From the NCBI GenBank assembly GCA_037447605.1, contig CM074805.1:868001-932000 (forward strand): a DNA stretch of 64,000 nucleotides, read 5' to 3'. A program made the position numbers and the translations under genes. Within the stretch, counting starts at the first letter, position 1. Every line of letters starts with the position of its first letter. Source of the stretch: Zygnema circumcarinatum SAG 698-1b (taxonomy: Eukaryota; Plantae; Zygnematophyceae). Of the stretch, positions 19,807 through 55,935 are shown piece by piece. Under the pieces are notes generated by a model that was given only the letters and a program-made list of their open reading frames with translations, had not been told where the DNA came from and ran no database searches.

Positions 19807-21713
19807 AAAAAAAAAAAAAAAAAAAAAAAACAAATTTGAAAGAAGCGAAACTGTCCTCAAAGCCGCCTTTGCAAGGGGGCGCTCTCATGGCAAGTGACGA
19901 CAGAGTCTTCTTAGACGTTATTCATTTTCGGTGATCTTTCCCAAGAGAGCATTGTTGGAGAAGGCGAGGCCGGAAAAAAGACTCCTCGTTTTTTTTGAAG
20001 GAGGGAAGAAAAGCTCGTCATATGCTCCCGAAAAAACGAATCCTGACGAACAGCAACTGCTAAGGGACAACAACGTGAGCACCAAAGCAACATTAAATAC
20101 TGCGAACCCTCCAGCTTTTAAAAAGATGAATAGACGGACAGGAAGGGCTTAATGATGTATGGTACAAAAATGTAACGGCCGTATCACTGCTAGCTGGGAC
20201 CGGATGGTTAAGTGAAGCCAACACGGAACACCCTTCATTGAGAGAACTCACTATTTACAGCACTCTGCTCCACATCACCACATTTCCAGGACGAACTAAA
20301 CACATGCCTGGCCATTGGCGGGCCTGAGCCACAACACCTAGAAGATCTTGTTCCCTTTACGGTTTAATGTGAGATAGTCTGTCTCTGATTAAGGGGGTAG
20401 AAAGGCCTGCTTACCTCATTCACAGCATCAGAAGAAGAGAGCGAAGCAGATCACCATGACGCCAATTAGCGGAAAGCCACACAAGAGATATCCCCAAAAC
20501 AGTACTGCAGAAGCTTCACTAGCCCCCACACCGTGAAGCTGCGCCATAGTTCCTGTATTTCCCAGCAAACACATCCATTAACTCCATCCCCTGCGTGCGC
20601 TTTGATATCATCGTCTCAGTAATAGGCCCTACCTCTAATACCTTCTCCAAAAAAGAAAGAAAAAAAAAAAAGAAAGGTTTCAGATGATAATACTCACTTC
20701 CCCTTATCATACTCAGGCAATTGACCAGAGAGATAATTGTTGGCCATACCCACCTTCAGAGGAGCTCTTGTGGTTTGTACACGCGAGCCAAAGAGGAGTG
20801 TGGCCCTACTCTACAGGCAAGGCGAGGCGAGGCTCTCCCACCAACACGTGGGCCGCCGCCGAAATCTGAACTGCTGTCACCACCAAACCAAATATAAGCT
20901 TGTTTTAAAGTCAAGCAATATGACTTCATAAAACTGAACACGGATTGAGATAGAAAAGAACCCTAACAAACCCTAAAAGCAGATTTTTTCATGTCAGGGA
21001 GGTATGAAGGGATGCAAGTTGCAGGGAGGAAGGGAGAAGAAGAACAATCACCAAGTTGATGAAGAAAAAGAAAAATATAAAATGCATGGGGAGAAAAGTG
21101 GGCAAAGAAGCTTACTTTAACAATGGCGGCCTTCTCCAAGAAGCGCTGCAAATCTCTACCGCATGTAGTTGGACATTCTAATTTACTTTTATTTCCTTTT
21201 CCTTTTCTCTGCTATACTATAGCCACACATCATTCTTTTGTACTTTACAGCCTTCTCCAAAAAGTCTTTTGCTCGATCAGGTTCTTTTCCAACAATCCCC
21301 AATGCTTCACGAGCATGTCCACTGTTCCCCCTTTTAACAACATCCCACCCTTTTAAAGCCCGGACCAAACCATCAATGGTTTTTGGACTGACAGCCTTCA
21401 TCATTGAAGAGACATTCGCCACTGCCGTTTTCTCGTCTTCACCACCCTCATCCATCCTCCATATAATTTCTATGACAATAGGATACATTCGATTCCACCA
21501 AGCATTTTTCCGATTATTTTCTCCTTGTCGTCCACCACTGTACCAACGCGTCACACCAAAAAATGCCATCAATTCGATGATGGGCTTTTTTCCTTCTGGC
21601 CCGACAATCCAGAACTCCTTCCACAAGCTAAGTACATCTGTGTGCATGCTGACTAAATATCTATCTAACTGTTTCCCAACATGCACTCTAAGTCCCTGAC
21701 CGTCTTTAGCCCC

Positions 21714-21873
21714 TGGCCCCATGGCTGGCCCCATGGCTGGCCCCATGGCTGGCCCCATTCCTGGCCCCATTCCTGGCCCCATTCCTGGCCCCATTCCTGG
21801 CCCCATTCCTGGCCCCATTCCTGGCCCCATTCCTGGCCCCATTCCTGGCTCTATGCCTGGCCCCATTCCTGGC
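21714..21873 (-). repeat. In-frame 12-bp tandem repeat encoding (PGMG/PAMG)n, about 13 units, in the Crypton linker
   Basis: TGGCCCCATTCC / TGGCCCCATGGC units seen directly. Confidence 0.95.
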
Positions 21874-24009
21874 CTGCCTCTCTGACTGCCTTGGCCCCAA
21901 CCGTTTCTTTCCTCGTCCATGCTTGGCCCCGTGCCTCCTTGCATGTCTTGGCCCCTGCCTTCTCTGCCCACATCTGTCCTTTCCTGCATGCCGCCTTGCA
22001 AGTACTCCCCTCTACCTTCGCTTCCCAGCTCTGACCTTTGGTCCATGCCATCACCCCGGCTTTGTCGTCCCACTTGTGTCTGGTGTTCATTGCTCCCCTG
22101 CAAATATTGCTCTTTGCCCATAAATCAACAAAAAAGTTGACACTTGAAAACTATACAACTAGTGTGAAAAGTAGGACTGTAATGAGGATATCAATACAAT
22201 TTTGTTTGATACACTAGAGAGATGAGAGTGATGAGAGTGATGCAGCATGGTTTTACTCACCATAGTTCGAGTCCATGACTGAGATTGTGTTGTCTTAGCT
22301 TGGATCCTGTCAAAGGCCTCCTTCTTCCTCCCCCCCTCGATCCTGGCCGCTCTCGCAAAATTGAGAACTTCTTCACTGAAATAACAACCTCAAGACAGGC
22401 GACGTCCGCCTCACCCCGTTAATGAAGCCCCCTTCCTCCTTCTTACTCTCCGCCTCCACCTCCAATCCGCCCACAGCAACAGCATCACCAACAGCAGCAA
22501 CACAACAAAAGCAAAAAAAGAAGCAGTCGCAGCAGAAAACATAGCAGCAGTAGCAACAGCAGCTGTAGCAGTGTTTTCTCAACAATAGCAAAAACAGCTG
22601 AAACAGGAGCAGCAGCAGCAGAAGCAGAGAAAGGAGCACTAAAAGCAGCAAGTGCAAAAGGGCCAGCAACAAAAAAAGCAGTAACAACCTTGAAAGGAAG
22701 ACCATACCCATTGCTCACCGTTGGAAGAATGGATGATTCGCGAACAATGGAATTTGTGGAGCGAACGATGCATCTTGCAATAAAACACATGCAAAATAAC
22801 GCAGCATGTCCACAAAGCCTCCAGCTGAAAGATTCCGGGACTTAAAAGGCACTCCACGAGTAACCTACACATAAAAACACATAACGTTAACCCTTTCCCC
22901 TCCTCTCAATCTCTTTCACACCCTTTCTCTGTCTTCCAGCCAAAAGATCCATGCAGTATGACATATTACCTGCTGTACAGTAGCTTCAAGGTCGGGAAGA
23001 AATGGGAAAACCATATTCACAAGCGCTTCATTTGGTTTAAGACAAGAACGCTCCAAAAAATAATCATCGCCTTCCTTTTTGAATCCTGCAAGCACCCTAC
23101 AGACGGGAGGGACAATCGAAGAAAGGTAATTGATTGCAAGGGATTTATTTGAAGCTTGGCCCCACCTCCCTGCCACCTGGATTTGATCAAACCCACAAGA
23201 GTGCGCGAAACATTCCCTTGCTGCCGCGCCACGGAATATGTGCAAGGTTCCTGAACAACGGAGATCTAAGTGCTCAATGATTTTTTTCATGAACTTTGAT
23301 TGTGCTTCACGACACATTTCAACCTCAGTGGAGTCTTTGGATGGAAACAATAAGGTTTTGTACCTGCAAATCAACAAACAAACGTGTCAATAAAAACAAT
23401 ACATTTGTGCAAAAATATAAAACAAAATACACAAATAATAGTTGATTGGATAAGTTTAGACTCACCAAAGGTAGTTGCTCCGAAGATCTGGAGGAGGTTC
23501 TTCTGATACAATGAACCTGTGGAACAAATATCGTGATATCCATCCATGACTGCAAAATTCCGGATCTGAATGTCTAAAGGAAGCCCCATATTGGACTGCT
23601 CCTCCCGAGTTCTTTTTCCCCCCACGTGACACCACACCTAGGACAGTACATTCAGATGGGCCAATAGCTGTTGTAGCCATATCATCAATAAATAGATCGA
23701 CCAACCGAATTGATCTTTGGTCATCTCCTCAAAGCATCATTGCTTTTGCTGTAGCTACCATACTACCATACTTTAAATATGTTTCGTTGTTGAATGACCC
23801 CATATACCTTAATTAACTTTTGAAAGTCTGAAAGCGCTAGTTTATACTTAACAGTCCCTCGTTTAGGATCAATGAACATCTAATGAACACAAAAACTAAA
23901 AGAAAGACATTTAGAGGGAGGAGGAGGAGGAGGGAGGGAAGCAAGTAAGGAGGGAGAGAAGGAGAGATCGGGCAGCAAAGAGGGAAAGAGAGAAAGCAGC
24001 AAACAACAA

Positions 24010-25560
24010 GCAGAATGCAGAATGCAGAATGCAGAATGCAGAATGCAGAATGCAGAATGCAGCATGCAGAATGCAGAATGCAAAATGCAGAATGCAGAAT
24101 GCAGAATGCAGAATGCAAAATGCAGAATGCAGAATGCAGAATGCAGAATGCAGAATGCAGAATGCAGAATGCAGAATGCAGAATGCAGAATGCAGAATGC
24201 AGAATGCAGAATGCAGAATGCAGAATGCAGAATGCAGAATGCAGAATGCAGAATGAATGCAGAATGCAGAATGCAGAATGCAGAATGCAGAATGCAGAAT
24301 GCAGAATGCAGAATGCAGAATGCAGAATGCAGAATGCAGAATGCAGAATGCAGAATGCAGAATGCAGAATGCAGAATGCAGAATGCAGAATGCAGAATGC
24401 AGAATGCAGAATGCAGAATGCAGAATGCAGAATGCAGAATGCAGAAAGTAGAAAGCCAAAAGCATACCTTGGCTTTATAGGCATGTCGCGTCTTTGTTCC
24501 TCTTCATCTTCGATTGTCGTTTCCGCTGCAAATATTGTCCTTTCAAGCTCTTCATCTCCTATAATACATCTATTCTTCTTCACTAGATAAGAGGCATCAT
24601 CAAATACGCTCCACGCTTCGTCTTCTGGACTCAACCCTAGATGATGAGGATAGAGATGAGGAATTCTTGGATCCATTTCTGCAATAGAAGAAAGAGGTAA
24701 GTAAACCACGCTGCATAAATGGATGGATAGAAAAAAAGATGGAGAATGCAGAATGCAAAATGCTGAATGCTGAATGCTGAATGCTGAATGCAGAATGCAG
24801 AATGCAGAATGCAGAATGCAGAATGCAGAATGCAGAAAGCAGAATGCAGAATGCAGAATGCAGAATGCAGAATGCAGAATGCAGAATGCAGAATGCAGAG
24901 CAGAAGCAGAATGCAGAATGCAGAATGCAGAATAGAATACAGAATGCAGAATGCAGAATGCAGAATGCAGAATGCAGAATGCAGAATGCAGAATGCAGAA
25001 TGCAGAATGCAGAATACAGAATGCAGAATGCAGAATGCAGAATCCAGAAAGCAAAATGCAGAATGCAGAATGCAGAATGCAAGATGCAGAATGCAGAATG
25101 CAGAATGCAAAAAGCAGAAAGCAGAAAGCAGAATGCAGAAAGCAAAAGCAAAAAGCAGAAAGTAGAAAGCAAAAAGCAGAAAGCACAGAGCAGAAAGCAG
25201 AAAGTGAAAAGCAGAAAGCCAATAGCATACCTTGGCTTTATAGGCATGTCGCGTCTTTGTTCCTCTTCATCTTCAATTGTCGTTTCCGCTGCAAATATTG
25301 TCCTTTTAAGCTCTTCATCTCCTATAATACATCCATTCTTCTTCACTAGATAAGAGGCATCATCAAATACGCTCCACGCTTCGTCTTCTGGACTCAACCC
25401 TAGATGATGAGGATAGAGATGAGGAATTCTTGGATCCATTTCTGCAATAGAAGAAAGAGGTAAGTAAACCACGCTGCATAAATGGATGGATAGAAAAAAA
25501 GATGGAGAATGCAGAATGCAGAATGCAGAATGCTGAAAGCAGAATGCAGAATGCAGAAAG
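24010..25560. repeat. (GAATGCA)n 7-mer satellite blocks filling Crypton introns, interrupted by two copies of an about 300-bp exon-containing module
   Basis: Three heptamer blocks (about 24010-24450, 24745-25210, 25505-25560). Near-identical modules at about 24451-24755 and 25213-25515. Confidence 0.97.
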
Positions 25561-25800
25561 ATGGATAGAGGCGTACCTGCAACACATGCGGTGGTAATGT
25601 GTAAGGGGGCGCGGCCGCCACACACCGCTCTCCGCAAGCAAGCAGGGCCTCCCTCGCTCGCTCGGGCTGTGTAGCAAACACGCCTCCAGCAGAGATCGAA
25701 CTCTAGACCTACCGGTACCAGGACACGATGTTCAATTTCAATGGGCGGTGGGCAAGCGGCGGCGAGCACACCCGAAGTTCAATTTCAGTGGTTTTAAATG

Positions 25801-47845: not shown

Positions 47846-49609
47846 GTTTCAACGATGCTTTCTACAAGTCCAAATTCTACTTCCAGGTAAAGCTCTCCAC
47901 CAATGGTCGGGTCTCCTATGCTCTCATGAGCTCCTGTTCGATGCCCTTACAGCCTCAGCTGCAGGCGGATTCAAAACTAGCAACAAGCTCTATCTCGCCA
48001 GAAAAGCTGCCAAAACCCAGCATCTAAGTTCAACCGGCGACCCTCGGGCCTGCCAGCTCAAACCATGCCAGGCACGGCAAGCAATCTCAAGCGCCCTTCT
48101 ACATAACAGGAATGGCGGGCGGCGCCTGGAATTCTCCACACTGAACGCTCAGTGGCGGAGCTTTCCGAGGGTCCGCACAAGCTGGATGACCTGGCAGCAG
48201 CCATGGCTGCCCCCCTGGCTGGACCTGGAGCCGCCTCGCGACGCAGGCAGGCAGCAGGACCACTGACAGGCGGGGGCTCCTCGACCAGACCTACGTTTCC
48301 TTTCAGCTGCCCGGAAGCCGGTCGGCCCAATCCCAAAACATATCACATTTCTGTACCAGCTCCGCTCGTTGGACACGTGTCCTTCCACTACTGGCTGGAA
48401 CTAACCGTTTCCAGTTCGTACGGTAACAATTAATTCAAAAATAGGTCAGGAAAAAAGTTGGTGACCGACCCTGTCACACGTGTGACGGCTATATCTGATA
48501 GGCTGTCTGGATTTCCCCCCTGCGGGCAGCCACAAGCTTCCCGGCGGCAGGATCCGCCTCGGGCCGTCCGCCGCCAGTCAACGAAATCCGTACAGAAAGC
48601 CGTCGCACACGCCTAGGAGACGCGTGATTGGTCCAAAATTGTTCGGGCAGGCTGGACAGTTGGCCGGACGTTGTCAGAATCTTCGCTCGAGAAGTTTCCA
48701 GATAAGATTCAATATCGGGATATATCGTCTGGAAATGTTTTGGCGGAAATGGGCGCGGTGGTTCCTGATTGGTCAACTCGTGGTGGCTGTTCGGAACTGC
48801 AATTACTGTATTCCGGTACCGTACTGACTAAATTAACATGGATTCAACTGACTAACGTGACTGACTACATTAGGCTTCATGTCGCTGACCATTGAATTGG
48901 CAACTTTGGCTAATCATCAGCCAATGGCTCTCAACCATCGAATGGCGGATCCAGCCAACCATTGGCAATGGGTTGCAACCACTGGGTTCAATGGTTGGTA
49001 GACATTGCCAATGGTTGGCGTCTTTGAGACAACCATTTTAGTTTGCCCGGTGTGCTGCTTTCCATATCCAGGTTCTGGTTGTGCTGCAGTTTGGCGCTTG
49101 CACATGTTTCGGCAAAAAAGTGGCAATGGTAGGTGAGGGGCTCCATACCAATGGACACATGACATGCGGCATGCCATGCTCAGTGCGTGTGCCATTCATA
49201 GCCATGTGTATTGAGCATTCCCTGCGTGCATGCATGCATGCACCGTGTTCACTGGATGTGCATGCAAGATCGAGATCCCCGTAATAACCACTTTCTTGGG
49301 AATAGTGATGTGTGCTTCCATTGTTCCACGTGAGCCACACCACAAACGACACAGAATGGGGGGATGGCAGAAAGGATCACCAAGAATCTGCACCCTTGCG
49401 GGCTTGGAAGGCACCTCGATGGTAAAAGAATAACGAACTCAAGAATCAATACCTAAAAAACTAGCCATTACATGTCTAACAGTAATAGAAATTCACTGAC
49501 CATTTATTACCTGACAAAGTTCAGCCTCGATCAGAATGACAAGGCGGCCGAGTCACAGAAGCACCTTGGAAAGAAAAAAAAAAATTAAAAAAACGAGGGC
49601 AAGCCGTGA

Positions 49610-52600
49610 TCACAACTCATCATGGTCGTAGTCGCTCGCGAATTCCAGGACGAGTTCTTCAAGATACATCTTCTTCACCATGCGGTATTGGATTGTCAAG
49701 TCGATGAGCCCATTCAGCGCCCCAACATGGCCACAATGCTCCCCAGCGCACTCTGCCTCCTGCTTCCTCCTCCCTACATTGATGGTCTTTTTGTCCATCG
49801 TAATGGTGGTCTTGAACGACTCCAAGATTTCCAGACACCTTCTACTTACCGACACAAAAGCATCCTCCACCTCCACCTCCCAGTCGGACTCATCAGCCGT
49901 CCACGGCCCCCCATGGGTCTCCCTCTCGAGCATAGCAAATGCCCCAATAAGCCGCGAGTCTACAACTCCATTAGGATAAAGCACAAGGGCCTCTCCATGA
50001 GTGTTGTCATGCGGATCAATGTAATCCGACCCCACCGCATTCAAACGATTGGCTAAGTCAGCCCTCCCCACAGACTGCAGCTGCTTCGCAGCTCCCTCCT
50101 TCGCAGCCTCTATGAAGTGCTCAAATGCGTCCTCTGGTATGGCTCTTTTCTTTCCCCGAAATGCTTTATGAAATCTGCACAGATAGTCCACGTCAAAATC
50201 TGTGGCTGAGACCATCCATCACCATCCTATAAACCTCAAATCACTCTTCTGTTCTTCAATTCTCCGTCCTAGACTCTTCCAACGACTGCTGTTACGAGGC
50301 AGAGATGAGTACCTTTTGATGTACCATTCGACAGCTTCAGCCAAGCTGTAGAACAAGACAGTGGAGTCACGTGGATTGGAAGCTGTCACCAGACCGTAAA
50401 ACACAAACATTGCTTCCGTTGTAAGGTCTCCATAGTCCGCCAAAGCCGCACTCCCAATCGGAATATGACCCTGTGCGAGCAGCTCTACGCGGTCACTAAA
50501 AACGCCGACTCCTCGCCAATCAGTGTTGGGCTGCATGCAGAAAAAAGGAGGGCTCACCAAAATGAGGTAGGAAGAATAAGTACGCAGCAGCAACCTCTAC
50601 AAACCGGTGGACATAAATGGCAACAAGCCTCTAACCTTCTCCGCTTCAAAAAACTGGCCAGCTATTTTTCCATCGTGCATTCTCGAGTGACAAAGGCACA
50701 AATATACGACTCACTAAACGTTTCTGTCCCTGTCTCTCTGCCTCTGTCGCGGTTTCAGCCTCAGTTTCCTTCGCAGGCAACAAGTATGATGGCAGCATTC
50801 AAACCTCCACGTGGTGATTTAAGAGATCTGCAATGGGCAGAAACATGTAGCGCCAACTCCCTTCCAGACTTCCCTCACTGCAGGATAAACAGTCGAATAA
50901 TGTATATTAAAATCGAAAAAAAAGGCCAACGACAAAAGCGAAAGCGAATGAAAGAATCGAGCAAACAATTTGGAATGCTTGTTCTTGTTCTCACCTCACC
51001 TTCTGGGTACAAACAACGCGAAAGCGTGATTCCACACCATGGTGAGGGCCCAACCAAAAGCCTCCCATGATGCATATGCGATTGCTTCAGGCTCACAAGC
51101 TTCATAGGCTTCCGCTGCCTCACTCTGAAGGTCCCTGATACGGCGGATGGTGGGCTCATACTGCACTTCAAACAGCTGATCTTGATGGAGATCCATCCAT
51201 GGAATGAGGTGGTGTTGAGGGAAGGTATCAAGGTATGGTTTCCATGGAGACTTATCACCCTGAACCGCATGGAAATAGGGATTCCAAGTCCAAAAGATTA
51301 AACATGTTAGGAATTTAGCTTCACTTGGTCGGTCGGTCTCGACCGAGGGGTTTTCAGATATGAGTGAAAACTACAACCCCCCTCTCCCGCTCCCTCTCTC
51401 TCTCGCACGTTTGTGCTGTTGCTCCCCTCCCTTTCCCCAGAGGCACAGCCTCTACTCGCCTTCACTGCTCCCTCACTGCATTTTGACTTAAGGTTGAAAC
51501 AGAAACCGCATTGTTTTGTCCATATCGACTGCATTCTGCGTCACCTAACTGCATTTCCATGTTGCTTGTTGAGTCAAAGTCTCACCAGTGCTAACTCGCG
51601 CAGGAGCTTTGCCGCAAGAGCAACCTGCCAGTCAGCTCCGTGATAAGGCCTAGGATCATTCTCCTGAAGTTCGAACGCTATAGAGTATGGGATTGTCACC
51701 ATAACATCACCGAATTCAAATGGAGAAACTGTGAAAAGTGCTCTATCATCGGCTTGTACATCGGGCAAGTATATGGACAACTTGTTGTGCGGGGGAAAAA
51801 CCTGTACGGAACAATGAGGAGTGAGAATCAGATAAGCACAGAGTCTTGGAAACGAGAGAAAGTCAATCAAAGAGGAAGGAAAATGAAGAGGGAAAGAGAT
51901 GAAGAATTAGAGTCGGAGAAAGAAACGAGAAAGAACAGAAAAAGGTAGGACAGTTATAGGAGAAAATAGAGAGAATGATAAACTGATGGAGGGTACAGAA
52001 CGAGCTTCACTATCTTGCCTAAAGCGAGATCCAAAGTTAAGACCCAATAGTCTTCACTAGAAATTTCAGGTCTCCTTCAAAACGAAAGTGATCGAGTAAA
52101 ATTGACGAGCTCTAATGCTTGGTATCCCGTGCAAATTCATGTAACCGAGTTTGTTACAGAGAGAGAGAAGCGTTGACAGTGAGCGTGTACACATTGATGC
52201 TAATGAAAAATAGCATGGATGGATCGTACAAGTGCATGGAGCATCCTTGCAGGTTTCAAAGCTCTCATTCTATTCAATAGTCGTTCTGAACTGATACATA
52301 GCGAGAAACTGCATAACTGTATGCTGTCCAAAAGTATGGTCAAATATTCACACGATTAAAGCAAAATACCTGGGGGCAAATTTCTTACAGACATGAGGGA
52401 AAGTAAACACGGTTTTAAACATTCAATGCAGATTTCGAAGTCATTTTATTGCTAATTCCTGACGATCTGACTTGGTTTTGATTCTGTACTTCTGTCTGCC
52501 CTATCAGAATCACCTGGAAGGCTGCCGCTGTCAGGGACAACTAGAAAGCCCTCAGCGCAAAATTTGTTAATTGTTGTGCTTCAAACCTCTCTGGCGAGCA

Positions 52601-53122
52601 CGAGAGGTACCACAAAGACTTTCAATGCCATTTTGTAGGTCACAGCGACTTAGATTCTATAATTACTTGACGCACCGAGCCGATTCGATACTCAAAGAGA
52701 CTGAATGACGATAATTTATACACAAGCAATGCGAATTCTTTTCATATCAACCTTCTGAGATCGAGCGAATTTGAGATTGTTACTGAAATACTGAAATCAT
52801 TTCAAGAGCCTGCCGCAAGATAGCTGTGTTTCTATGTCTGACCGCCCTCCAGTCTGCAAAAGCAGCCTCATCATGCTTCAAGAGGGATCCATGGCGGGTG
52901 CGGATCCCGCAAGGATCTCTCAGGCTATTCCAGGCAGTGATGGCAGAGGTAACGGACCTCGGTCACATTGTTGTGCCGAAGCCAATCCAGAAACACAACT
53001 GTGGCATTGCGATCTCCCGATAAATCGCCTCCTGCCTCTTCCTTCTCGCTCTCTCCGACAGCCATGTCCGAGGCTGCGAGAAGAAATCCAAGAAGCAAAA
53101 GCCATAGCTCGACAGGTGGCAT
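49610..53122 (-). CDS. SET-domain protein methyltransferase (Rubisco-LSMT/SETD3 class), about 498 aa, with signal peptide and C-terminal HDEL
   Basis: GT-AG exons 53122-52958, 51801-51586, 51259-51000, 50877-50805, 50530-50313 and 50174-49610 join in frame. SET motifs FLDWL, DRALF..GDVMVTIP, LAAKLLRE..SPWKPYLDTFP, AFGWALTMV, LPIADLLNH and ADYG..FVFYG..NPRD. LSMT substrate-binding-like end ILESFKTTITMD..QYRMVKK. Terminates YDHDEL*. Confidence 0.88.
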
Positions 53123-53988
53123 CTAGCAGCCGCTCATTAGAAAGACTGCCGTAAACTTCCACTTCCGGCGGACACGCGGCGGCTGCAGAGAGACGATGAA
53201 GGTGCCCCCTTATACCCTTCTCCTGGACGCCGAGACACTTCGCCCATAGCCTGCCCGCGCTGTCACCGCATTATCATCGCGGCTGTTCCAGCGCAGGGAG
53301 GGAGGGAGGTAGGGAGGGAAGGAGGCGGGAGTGAGCAGCGGCAACCCCGTTAAGCTACCGCGACGACCAGCACCACAGCTTAGGGAACCGAGGGACGTAT
53401 CGGCTGTACACTGATGCCATGTCGAATCGAATCGAATCGTATCTTTACTATCTTGACGTGTATCGATATGACAATTATGATCGTTACAAAACGATATATC
53501 GTACGCGCATATCGGTGCTCTGGGATGCCCTCGTCATACGGGCACATTGTTGTCACGTGGCATTACGTTAATGGCTGCGTCCGCGACATGTGGCGTCATC
53601 AGACTGTAGGACAAGGGCTTGACTTTGTGCCACGGGGCGGCAGCTTTGTCGTTTGCGAAAAGGCCACTTCGCCGGCGTGTTGGCTATGACCTTCAGAACG
53701 TGCCGGCGCCGGCAAGCTCGATCGTGTATGGCCGGCAGCTCCGCTGGCCGGCCGAAGTACGGTCAAGGCGCCGGCGGAAAGGCCGGCCGGCACCGGCAAG
53801 CTCTGTCGGTCACAGCCGATACGCTGGCAAGTTTCCGATACGACCACCAATGGCCATGGCTTTGTTGACTTGGCGGTACAGTACTGATGATCACGAGCAC
53901 CGTAATGGTTATAGTCATGGTCATGACTATAAGGGCGAAGATGAAGGGGGCGGGGAGGGAGAGAGGGAGGGGCTGAGGGACGGCGGCC

Positions 53989-55935
53989 ATGGCGGAAAGG
54001 GGCGTCTGGAGAATGCGGTGCTGCGATCCCTGTAGTTATGGCCGCAGCAAGGTTACTTCCAGCGGCAGCTTCAAAATCTTAAGTCACCCGGGTCGTCGTA
54101 AGCCTGAACTGTCGTCTGCAAATGTGAACGGTGTTAGCAACATCCATGGCGGTTACAGGTACAAAATGAGGTTGGATTCTTCTCTATTTTACAGAAGTAT
54201 GGCTATATTTAGGGGTTTTCATGCTGCTTACAAGGAAGACTGTTGCATTTCAGGAGGAAGGTTTGACAATGTTGCTTCAGGCTTGAGGTCAACTTCAAGG
54301 TTAAGGTTAGGGTTAAGTTTAGAGTTAGCTTTAGGGTTAGAGACCGGGTTAAGGAGCGGGCTTATTCACAATACTCGAGTTGTGAAGGCAAGGGCGTCTG
54401 GGTCATTTTTTGAGTTCAACAAAACACCGGCTCGCGATCGAAAATTAGATTTTGGCGCTCATAAGGGTAAGTGGTTAGGGACTGTACCTCCTAAGTATCT
54501 CAAATGGATAGTGAAGGAGGGTTTCAAGCCTGAGTCTGATAAAGTTGAAGTATATAACGAGGATGGTGAACCAGTAGACAACCCTCTTGATTATTGGGCA
54601 GCAGCTGCAAAGGAAGTGCTGTCAGATTCCGTGTATAGGGACCGTATAGAATGGGAAGAAATTTGGGGAGATAGTAAGATAGAGGAAGCTCATTTATGGA
54701 GGACAAAGGAAAAGTCATTCGGTTGGATACCAAGGGAAAATACAGAGGCCTGGAGGGGAGTTGATTATCGCTTGCTTGGAACATCCTTCACAAAACCCAT
54801 TCCCAGGTTAGGAAGTGGTCGCGATAGGAAAGTCATTCTTGAAAAACGTAAGGCTTCAGTGAAACAGGTAGTCTTGCCGGGCGTTGAGAATGACTTGCAA
54901 AGAAGAAGGGCTATGAGACGGAGGCGGAGATTGATGGCGGAGCAAGAGGCCACTGAGGGGACGGCAGTAGAGACCAAGGGATTCGGTATTGAAGGGAAAC
55001 GGGAGGAGGAGGAGGAAGAGGAGGAGGTCGCAAGGGAAGTGGTTACGCCTGCAAGTCTGTTTCCAGGAAGACAGGGGATGCTCTCTCAGTTTAACGAACT
55101 GCGGACAAAGAGCAGGGATGCGACAAGCAGTGAAGAAAAGGAAAGGCAAGGTGAACTTGAGACGGCCACTAGAGCGGAAGGACTGAGCTTCATTTCTAGA
55201 CAGGAGCTGGCAGGGTTGGTCCGGATGGGAGCAGCTCCTCGAGGCAAGCCGACTCGCGGTGACAAGGGAAAGGAGAGTGATGGGACACGCGCCAAGAGAA
55301 GGACAGTGACTAGATCGATGAATGAAGCGTTGAGCAATGAGCTCTTAAGGGTTTCAGAAGGGGATGGTAACGCAGCCAGAGATGACACACAAGCGAATGT
55401 TCAGACTGCTGATGGAGAGAGACAAGGACTATTGGCCAGGTATCTTAAACCAGTAAGGTCAAGGTCTACCATTCGAAGAGTTGAAGGAGATGAGAGTGAG
55501 GGAGTAGAACCGTCAGCTAGGTCTTCCAAGTCTCCCAGGTTGAGGAAGACCTCAAGGAGTCGACATGAAAGGGACGAAAGTGAGGGAGGGGAATCGCTGC
55601 TTGGTGAGGCACGTGAAGCGCGGGTCCCTTCTGCGAGCAGAAAGAGCGGAAATGCAGTTGGATCTTTGTTGACCAAATATTCTAAAGCGGCAAAGTCACA
55701 GGAGCCTTTGGCTGATGCAGGGGTTAATGATGGGAAGGTACAAGAGTCTCCAGTTCACACGGGTGGAGATGGCAATAGTAATGTTGCAGGGAATGGGGAG
55801 AGAGCAACGAAGAAAACGTCTGATGAACGTGCGGAGCGGAAGAAGGGAAAGCAAGGAGTAGGCCTGAAGGGATTGGTGCATAGAGAGCTCGACATGGTCG
55901 AGAATCTTTGGAGTTCGCGAAGTTCTGAAGTTTGA
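53989..55935 (+). CDS. 648-aa single-exon plant protein with a DUF3820/QSregVF_b-like domain and a long charged low-complexity C-terminus; possibly organelle-targeted
   Basis: Intact 1947-nt ORF with RDRKLDFGAHKGKWLGTVPPKYLKW..WAAAAKEVLSDSVYRDRIEWE, VDYRLLGTS..IPR and LFPGRQGML motifs, recognised from a conserved plant family. Confidence 0.8.
   Translation: MAERGVWRMRCCDPCSYGRSKVTSSGSFKILSHPGRRKPELSSANVNGVSNIHGGYRYKMRLDSSLFYRSMAIFRGFHAAYKEDCCISGGRFDNVASGLRSTSRLRLGLSLELALGLETGLRSGLIHNTRVVKARASGSFFEFNKTPARDRKLDFGAHKGKWLGTVPPKYLKWIVKEGFKPESDKVEVYNEDGEPVDNPLDYWAAAAKEVLSDSVYRDRIEWEEIWGDSKIEEAHLWRTKEKSFGWIPRENTEAWRGVDYRLLGTSFTKPIPRLGSGRDRKVILEKRKASVKQVVLPGVENDLQRRRAMRRRRRLMAEQEATEGTAVETKGFGIEGKREEEEEEEEVAREVVTPASLFPGRQGMLSQFNELRTKSRDATSSEEKERQGELETATRAEGLSFISRQELAGLVRMGAAPRGKPTRGDKGKESDGTRAKRRTVTRSMNEALSNELLRVSEGDGNAARDDTQANVQTADGERQGLLARYLKPVRSRSTIRRVEGDESEGVEPSARSSKSPRLRKTSRSRHERDESEGGESLLGEAREARVPSASRKSGNAVGSLLTKYSKAAKSQEPLADAGVNDGKVQESPVHTGGDGNSNVAGNGERATKKTSDERAERKKGKQGVGLKGLVHRELDMVENLWSSRSSEV

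Follow-up and report, generated by a model that had tools for sequence, protein, structure and literature searches.

Background

Methyltransferases with a SET domain are known to occur in the nucleus, the cytosol and plastids. SETD3, the actin-histidine N-methyltransferase, is a cytosolic protein without signal peptide or HDEL, and SETD6, Rubisco LSMT and LSMT-like proteins, yeast Rkm4, SETD4 and Arabidopsis SDG40 are cytosolic, nuclear or plastid enzymes; we know of no enzyme of this latter type that carries both a signal peptide and H/KDEL. PAP7/pTAC14, also a SET protein, has a structural role as a subunit of the RNA polymerase of plastids. The ER-retrieval signal is described in PROSITE by the pattern [KRHQSA]-[DENQ]-E-L at the very end of a protein; to our knowledge, no ER resident of the H/KDEL class is a SET-domain enzyme, nor is protein lysine methylation among the modifications of the ER lumen as they are counted.

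METTL9 is an N-glycosylated and disulfide-bonded protein methyltransferase that enters the ER by a signal peptide (10.64898/2025.12.23.696137; PMC8571522); protein methylation dependent on S-adenosylmethionine (SAM) therefore exists on the luminal or extracellular side. The fungal NHMT is located in the ER and methylates secretory proteins (at the N-terminal His of LPMOs), and its authors raise the supply of SAM to the ER as an open issue (PMC10349129). The import of SAM into the plant Golgi, by GoSAMT, has been documented (10.1101/2021.07.06.451061, PMC9946043).

Gene structure and transcripts

The window analysed here, a stretch of 64,000 nucleotides from Zygnema circumcarinatum SAG 698-1b (contig CM074805.1, positions 868,001 to 932,000), contains a gene that a first-pass annotation had read as encoding an ER-luminal SET-domain methyltransferase. 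The whole coding span (49610-53122 of the window, on the minus strand, as are all the gene features given below) comprises six exons and five introns, all of the latter GT-AG, and the joined exons yield one open frame of 1497 nt, corresponding to 498 codons plus the stop. All five exon joints were present in RNA contigs from four runs (X1, X2, X5 and X7) belonging to three studies, and the RNA depth was 10 to 50 times higher in the exons than in the introns. The open frame, the intron borders and the exact match of the RNA contigs to the first and last exons confirmed the proposed gene model; a different first or last exon in the transcripts would have refuted the annotated reading. The joint of the predicted intron ahead of the HDEL exon (50175-50312) was among those seen in the contigs, while the annotated number of six junctions had to be corrected to five.

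Exon 1 (52958-53122, 165 nt) holds the start codon, the predicted signal peptide, an acidic stretch, two sequons and the motif FLDWL. The N-terminal SET strands (DDRALFT..GDVMVTIPYS), which align with motif I of class VII SET proteins, are encoded in exon 2 (51586-51801, 216 nt), where the inserted helical (iSET) region also begins; this region continues through exon 3 (51000-51259, 260 nt), with WNHAF at its end. The short exon 4 (50805-50877, 73 nt) carries the cofactor-binding motif LPIADLLNH (A230, N234 and H235), and exon 5 (50313-50530, 218 nt) the C-terminal part of SET with ADYG (Y271) and FYG (Y283). Exon 6 (49610-50174, 565 nt including the stop) encodes a C-terminal helical domain that resembles the substrate-binding domain of Rubisco LSMT, together with the Cys pair C453/C458, a variable acidic linker, HDEL and the stop.

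The 5' leader (53123-53436) is unspliced and contains several short upstream ORFs; the RNA contigs covering it were collinear with the genome from 52956 to 53286/53287 (X1, X2 and X5) or to 53436 (X7). A TAG at 53125-53123 directly adjoins the main ATG and closes an in-frame upstream ORF of four codons. It had been suspected of being a splice acceptor, a possibility that was ruled out because the contigs run collinear through it, from 52956 to about 53287, placing it within the unspliced leader. The 3' UTR (49365-49609), with a poly(A) site near 49365, was deduced from the X7 contig, which stops at 49365 and ends with 24 unaligned T (plus strand), and from the X1 contig, which starts at 49296, past this site.

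Relatives of the Zygnema protein

A search of 1.8 billion representative proteins yielded only seven relatives, which group in a clade of their own with a long stem (100/99). The ortholog P0001 shares 62% identity with the window protein. An AFDB entry of 793 aa, A0A2R6XJH1, with 23% identity, is a candidate for membership of the clade. In another member, the L005 gene, the lengths of the first five exons are identical to those of the window gene (exon 1 is also 165 nt long), so that this architecture is ancestral. Word-indexed homolog searches using P0001, the alignment A1 and P0002, with scoring confined to the 8000 candidates that had the most words in common, recovered almost only the queries, and no named land-plant orthologs were among the results. 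The mature proteins are acidic (pI 4.8-5.6), and the Cys pair, which lies in a loop, is kept in four members with variable spacing and is missing in the L005 gene.

SET fold, motifs and substrate pocket

The window protein bears the intact motifs LPIADLLNH (aa 227-235), ADYG (Y271) and FYG (Y283), as had been annotated, and matches outgroup class VII proteins in the cofactor and catalytic motifs PxxDxxNH, xYG and (Y/H/S)GF. The Pfam SET domain was recognized in P0001 (30.1 bits for a cut-off of 22.4, 6.9e-7, residues 80-277); Pfam searches with five single-exon translations of the window gene gave nothing useful, since the domain is split by introns over four exons. For Rubis-subs-bind (cut-off 21.6), P0002 and P0003 scored 24.9 and 23.2 bits, respectively, and both P0001 and the exon 6 piece remained below the cut-off; the C-terminal helical domain is nevertheless covered by the fold match and by a second stretch of the SETD3 profile alignment. 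Matches of exon 6 to GBP_C and Sey1 in the Atlas were discarded as sub-threshold helical look-alikes (scores under 0.9).

Compared with the PDB, the family profile matched SETD3 (2e-13), PAP7 (2e-11), SETD6 (2e-9) and LSMT (2e-6). Structural comparisons were made with an AF2 model of the ortholog P0001, not of the window protein; this model (pLDDT 79.7, pTM 0.75), built from 16 sequences, replaced a first one from nine sequences in which the SET core was unmodelled (pLDDT 63). Its alignments to SETD3, SETD6 and LSMT span some 490 columns (TM 0.55-0.67, E 1e-14 to 1e-11). Profile matches, fold and motifs thus all bear out the assignment to the LSMT/SETD3/SETD6 class.

In the substrate pocket, H205 and F207 of WNHAF align with SETD3 R253 and N255 in the profile alignment, and the position of SETD3 W273 is occupied by Ala230. 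The lysine-converted N255F/W273A mutant of SETD3 was the best PDB match (6.6e-15, versus 2e-13 for the wild type). Y271 aligns with SETD3 Y312, and Y283 with the Tyr of SETD6 'MYGFV', which we take to be the position of LSMT Y287 and SETD6 Y285. Judged from these aligned residues alone, the pocket looks lysine-type, and the residues point to that rather than to the histidine-type pocket of SETD3. A SETD3-type histidine specificity was rejected on Phe207 and Ala230, and, of the "Lys/His methyltransferase" annotated earlier, the lysine alternative is the one favoured by the pocket residues, the activity itself being an inference.

Some relatives are substituted at positions that are otherwise invariant: NH is replaced by SH, and the Tyr of FYG by His, in both P0002 and P0003, while the Tyr of ADYG is Trp in P0002 and Phe in the L005 gene, there with Gly changed to Asp; the window protein itself has His at the position of SETD3 R253. 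The family may for this reason not be uniformly catalytic, and the SET fold could serve for binding or scaffolding within the ER, as a luminal pseudo-methyltransferase comparable to PAP7/pTAC14, which moreover ranks second among the PDB relatives matched by the family profile. We nonetheless regard a non-enzymatic role as unlikely, given that NH and both Tyr are retained in the window protein, in P0001 and in the Closterium homologs, that the class VII SET proteins P0012 and P0014, outside the family, likewise have His in place of the FYG Tyr, that SETD3 itself carries Ser there, and that conservation within the family is highest in the SET motif blocks.

Putative targeting signals at both ends of the protein

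The window protein begins with MPPVELWLLLLGFLLAASDMAVG, in which a hydrophobic core of 12 residues, LWLLLLGFLLAA, occupies positions 6-17 and is followed by small residues suited to cleavage at AAS|D or AVG|E. Its best 11-residue Kyte-Doolittle window (2.72) begins at residue 6; no second membrane-like segment was detected, all the top 19-residue hydrophobicity windows being N-terminal. On these grounds codons 1-23 (53054-53122) are predicted to encode a cleavable signal peptide, in agreement with the annotation, although the call is heuristic, based on hydrophobicity and the -3/-1 rule and not on a trained predictor. The features of a plastid transit peptide are absent, as the N-terminus has no basic residue and consists of a Leu-rich core and then an acidic stretch, and a plastid or mitochondrial presequence was rejected on this composition. 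In the relatives the hydrophobic core is kept without sequence identity. In P0002, P0006 and, with a true ATG start, P0003, this core is preceded by 20-40 residues, and for that reason the N-terminal segments of these three may be signal anchors. The two annotated sequons, NAT (aa 39-41, 53008-53000) and NVT (aa 52-54, 52969-52961), are both present in the window protein, but they are conserved only in the nearest ortholog.

At its other end, the protein terminates exactly in YDHDEL-stop, as annotated, with the HDEL codons at 49624-49613 and the TGA stop at 49612-49610, and the tetrapeptide fits the pattern for retrieval by the K/HDEL receptor. Five homologs show H[DE]EL without exception at their extreme C-terminus, whereas the linkers that precede it differ in length and sequence; the ending is HDEL in P0001, P0002 and the L005 gene, and HEEL in P0003. 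Since a given C-terminal tetrapeptide is expected by chance in roughly one protein in 10^5, its recurrence in five homologs with differing linkers is more than chance. In the AF2 model of P0001 the equivalent tail is unstructured (residues 500-505, pLDDT under 50). The combination of signal and H[DE]EL occurs in relatives from at least four other species, and four full-length relatives have both an N-terminal hydrophobic signal and an HDEL or HEEL end, the neighbouring sequence being unconserved. Loss of either element in the orthologs would have refuted the annotated ER-luminal address; the closest homologs keep both, and the address is supported at the level of sequence, the localisation itself being inferred.

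Alternatively, an active enzyme might have its main site of action in the cis-Golgi, or act chiefly on passing cargo (such as wall or secreted proteins), with HDEL tuning only its residence time. The SAM import known from plants is that of the Golgi, through whose cis side HDEL proteins are established to cycle. The Closterium homologs lack HDEL, a missed HDEL exon having been looked for downstream of the Closterium gene and not found, and one Closterium model has a long hydrophobic, membrane-anchor-like N-terminal segment (19-residue window, 2.79) that resembles those of type II Golgi enzymes. However, the Closterium N-termini derive from uncertain gene models, some of them fused to a neighbouring BRK-domain gene, and the strict retention of H[DE]EL in five lineages argues that ER residence matters, which leaves a mainly post-ER role improbable. 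Even less credit is due to non-functional targeting signals, with a cytosolic or dual location (for instance through leaky scanning to Met20) and an HDEL without role: the weak context of the main ATG (T at -3, C at +4), the strong one of the Met20 ATG (G at -3, G at +4) and five upstream ATGs would allow it, yet no homolog shares Met20, in contrast to the conserved hydrophobic core and H[DE]EL, and an invariant tetrapeptide beside a variable linker is not expected without selection. A signal-less isoform starting at Met20 remains conceivable in this species.

Proposed function

The gene model, its transcription, the class VII SET fold, the intact motifs and the conservation across the clade of an N-terminal signal and H[DE]EL have been demonstrated here. 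With a confidence somewhat better than even, we read the locus as a nuclear gene that is expressed and whose product is a soluble and acidic SET protein of ~54 kDa and of the LSMT/SETD3/SETD6 class, with an address in the early secretory lumen and an inferred role in luminal lysine methylation. The signal peptide would carry the protein across the ER membrane and be cleaved near residue 18-23, and in the cis-Golgi the K/HDEL receptor would bind the exposed HDEL and return the protein to the ER. There, the luminal SET domain may use SAM to methylate the epsilon-amine of lysine in a small number of proteins, perhaps a single one, that reside in the lumen or pass through it and are selected, presumably, by the helical C-terminal domain. 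The cofactor could be imported, for example by a carrier of the GoSAMT type as in the plant Golgi; for the ER proper of plants, as far as we know, no SAM import is on record. For the window protein, ER residence, activity, luminal SAM and substrates are all inferred and have not been shown.

The combination of signal and HDEL in the relatives points to a hitherto undescribed protein lysine methylation within the ER. A broader hypothesis, held tentatively and with rather less than even confidence, is that a dedicated lysine methylation of the ER lumen exists in streptophyte and other green algae, in which an ancient clade of HDEL-retained SET enzymes, supplied by an unknown ER import of SAM, acts on luminal chaperones or secretory cargo, land plants having apparently lost the clade or remodelled it strongly. 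If true, a conserved SET enzyme bearing the classic address of luminal proteins would enlarge the set of modifications known from the ER, and would imply a SAM supply to the ER/cis-Golgi lumen beyond polysaccharide methylation. The family would exemplify the natural transfer of an old enzyme fold to a new compartment, and the hypothesis is directly testable in a culturable alga.

Comparison with known systems

SETD3 (3smt, 6ict) was both the best PDB profile match (2e-13) and the best Foldseek match, and judged by profile and fold it has a three-part build in common with the family, in which a SET domain is split by a helical insertion and a further helical domain, apparently for substrate binding, makes up the C-terminal part; however, the identity is only ~18%, and SETD3 N255, W273 and R253 are Phe, Ala and His in the window protein. 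With SETD6, Rubisco LSMT and LSMT-like proteins, Rkm4, SETD4 and SDG40, the fold is shared over nearly the full length (TM 0.53-0.67), together with the PxADLLNH, xYG and YGF motifs and a lysine-type pocket, whereas the identity is 14-19% and the window family constitutes its own clade. What the protein has in common with BiP, PDI and calreticulin is an acidic, soluble chain that combines a cleavable signal peptide (predicted here) with H/KDEL at its end.

Literature searches gave no report of a luminal SET-domain enzyme, or of a SET protein with signal peptide and H/KDEL. The earlier statement that no pathway of this kind has been described in plants stands in this respect, but it has to be qualified by the precedents for secretory-pathway methylation outside plants. 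METTL9 differs in being an animal enzyme of the seven-beta-strand fold that methylates N-pi-histidine in HxH motifs and is secreted, not HDEL-retained, and the fungal NHMT in being an integral enzyme with seven transmembrane segments, of unrelated fold, whose target is an N-terminal histidine. GoSAMT indicates that plant endomembrane lumens can receive SAM, although it has been described for the Golgi and not for the ER. What appears to be new, in that we found no report of it, is a SET enzyme with a luminal address, whereas protein methyltransferases of other folds in the secretory pathway and the import of SAM into the plant Golgi were already known.

Gene structure and expression

Joining of six exons on the minus strand (53122-52958, 51801-51586, 51259-51000, 50877-50805, 50530-50313 and 50174-49610) gave a single open reading frame of 498 codons plus TGA, with introns that were all of the GT..AG type. 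The encoded SET-domain protein begins with MPPVELWLLLLGFLLAASDMAVG, a TAG standing immediately 5' of its ATG, carries the sequons NAT (aa 39-41) and NVT (aa 52-54) and the SET motifs LPIADLLNH (aa 227-235), ADYG (Y271) and FYG (Y283), and has YDHDEL as its C-terminal residues. When re-read in the joined exons, the start, sequons, SET motifs and terminus reported in the first-pass annotation were all accurate, the sole correction being that its six junctions are five introns.

RNA contigs from four runs belonging to three studies were aligned to positions 48600-54000 of the window, and joints were read after shifts of 1-2 bases. Five joints (50174|50313, 50530|50805, 50877|51000, 51259|51586 and 51801|52958) were found in all four runs, and word depth in the exons was 10-50 times that in intron 1, establishing the gene and its expression. 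The first of these joints, which links the HDEL exon (exon 6) to the rest of the gene, had been predicted at exactly this position. From 52956 the contigs stay collinear past the start codon, as far as about 53287 (53436 in run X7), which places the TAG preceding the ATG in an unspliced leader and rules out the earlier suggestion that it could be a splice acceptor. The poly(A) end was located close to position 49365. In run X5 only, a donor at 52512 within intron 1 was joined on the minus strand to 51801 (exon 2) as a minor alternative, at about one fifth of the main-joint depth; with translation from the normal ATG, the part of intron 1 that is retained brings in a stop after 65 codons.

The reading frame upstream of the main ATG is closed twice. 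Five upstream ATGs precede it in the leader (53123-53436, minus strand), located at 53420 (21 codons), 53277, 53271, 53247 (36 codons) and 53137, the last opening an in-frame uORF of four codons whose TAG abuts the main ATG. The context of the main ATG is weak (T at -3, C at +4), which together with the uORFs suggests translational control by uORFs, or reinitiation. The context of Met20 is strong, and this residue is not conserved among the homologs; an isoform without the signal could exist in this species, though not as a feature of the family. Short CT/GA-rich low-complexity stretches at 51383-51404 (intron 2) and 53288-53335 (leader or promoter) attached unrelated RNA contigs, and their reads were skipped as repeats.

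A divergent, apparently intronless reading frame of 648 codons (53989-55935, plus strand) has its start about 870 bases from the start codon of the SET gene. It is transcribed, with RNA depth from 53849, is rich in charged low-complexity stretches, and matched no Pfam family at E up to 0.001. Long minus-strand reading frames were also observed at 21189-25769.

Relatives and conservation of the address labels

When 1.8 billion representative proteins were scanned in full by HMMER, with the 187-residue translation of exon 6 as query, only seven had E values of 0.001 or below. The nearest ortholog, P0001 (505 aa, from transcript contigs), is 62% identical overall, begins with MKLPSVYSSRPLLVLLLTCLLV... 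and ends in HDEL. P0002 (517 aa, from a transcriptome) has a hydrophobic segment at residues 30-40 and ends in HDEL, P0003 (550 aa, from a transcript contig) has an N-terminal hydrophobic segment and ends in HEEL, and P0004, also ending in HDEL, is the last exon of a gene on the genomic contig L005. This gene was rebuilt (L005:595-2487), and its product starts with MNIQTLNFHKHFFFYVSVIFIFNASCIF and ends in HDEL. Its exons measure 165, 216, 260, 73, 218 and 556 nt, those of the window gene 165, 216, 260, 73, 218 and 565 nt, with the same intron phases; despite the identical lengths of the first five exons, the two proteins are only about 37% identical. The L005 contig is AT-rich, and the G+C content of the family loci ranges from 37% to 64%, indicating different source organisms. 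A PPR-protein gene adjoins the SET homolog on L005.

Aligned across the family, the N-terminal regions have no common sequence, only a hydrophobic core. A linker of variable length (4 to 18 residues) leads to an invariant H[DE]EL at the terminus. Judged from sequence, a conserved core and an invariant tetrapeptide beside variable sequence are the pattern expected for a selected signal peptide and retrieval signal. The start of P0003 was called at a GTG, and an upstream in-frame ATG adds 41 residues before the hydrophobic core, so that the segment in P0002, P0003 and Closterium may represent either a signal anchor or a long signal peptide, and both would place the SET domain on the luminal side.

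For Closterium sp. NIES-64 (L004:1-10646; P0005 and P0009), several deposited models, with products of 890 and 1383 residues, fuse the SET gene to an upstream BRK-domain gene. A separate SET model of 726 residues exists alongside them, and the fusions are probably annotation artefacts. One Closterium model has a strongly hydrophobic N-terminal segment (2.79 in a 19-residue window). These homologs end in ..EGIAEA, and no downstream HDEL exon was present at the Closterium gene.

In a maximum-likelihood tree the seven members formed a single clade (100/99) on a long stem, apart from the other collected class VII SET proteins (the LSMT/SETD3/SETD6 type, with a split SET and a Rubis-subs-bind domain); branching inside the clade was unresolved. 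The best AFDB cluster match was a 793-aa SET protein with 23% identity. The clade appears to be absent from land plants, as judged by a lone scan whose only query sequence was the C-terminal domain.

Fold class and active site

Profile, fold and Pfam results were obtained on P0001 and on exon pieces, not on the whole window protein. By Pfam, P0001 has a SET domain and both P0002 and P0003 a Rubis-subs-bind domain; the family profile matched the solved structures of SETD3 (2e-13), PAP7/pTAC14 (2e-11), SETD6 (2e-9) and Rubisco LSMT (2e-6). The AlphaFold model of P0001 (pLDDT 79.7, pTM 0.75), which has no ordered structure in residues 1-35 or in the final six, matched SETD3, SETD6, LSMT, SETD4, Rkm4 and Arabidopsis SDG40 over nearly the whole length at 14-19% identity. 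By these profile and model matches, the family branches off deeply and separately within the LSMT/SETD3/SETD6 class.

In the profile alignment, SETD3 residues R253, N255, W273, N277-H278 and Y312 correspond to H205, F207, A230, N234-H235 and Y271 of the window protein. The counterpart of Y283 in SETD6 is the Tyr of 'MYGFV', which we take to be the position of LSMT Y287 and SETD6 Y285. The best PDB match of the family profile was the SETD3 N255F/W273A mutant, engineered into a lysine methyltransferase, which fits a lysine-type pocket, a reading that remains predictive. All these motifs are kept in the window protein, P0001 and Closterium. P0002 and P0003 have SH in place of NH and a His at the FYG Tyr, P0002 a Trp at the ADYG Tyr, and the L005 gene Phe-Asp at the Tyr-Gly of ADYG. 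That family proteins are non-catalytic was kept as an alternative, mainly because the Asn-to-Ser change is unusual; against it, unrelated class VII proteins can likewise carry His at the FYG position, where SETD3 has a Ser.

Proposed luminal function

No second hydrophobic segment was found in the window protein. Mature family proteins are acidic (pI 4.8-5.6), and the NAT and NVT sequons are common to the window protein and P0001 only. A cysteine pair in a loop of the C-terminal domain is kept in four members with variable spacing, the loop being absent in the L005 gene; a disulfide is possible, without distance data. The most likely mechanism is that the SET protein would enter co-translationally through its signal peptide, with cleavage predicted around residues 18-23, and that the K/HDEL receptor would return it from the cis-Golgi, both steps being inferred. 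Once in the lumen, it would use SAM to methylate lysines of luminal or transiting proteins, which its helical C-terminal domain would select; activity, SAM supply and substrates are likewise inferences. Demonstrated are the gene and its expression, the class of fold, the motifs and the conservation of the address labels.

Comparison with known systems

In the full-text literature no paper was found that describes a luminal SET enzyme, or a SET-domain protein bearing both a signal peptide and H/KDEL, and the compartments listed in genome-wide SDG surveys are software predictions only. There are precedents for protein methylation on the luminal side: METTL9, which carries a signal peptide, is a secreted, N-glycosylated protein (10.64898/2025.12.23.696137; PMC8571522), and fungal NHMT is an ER membrane methyltransferase acting on secreted LPMOs, whose authors noted ER SAM supply as an open point (PMC10349129). 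Golgi SAM carriers (GoSAMTs) have been described in plants (10.1101/2021.07.06.451061; PMC9946043). The new element would be the combination of a SET fold and putative lysine chemistry with the address of a soluble ER resident, conserved within a small clade of algae.
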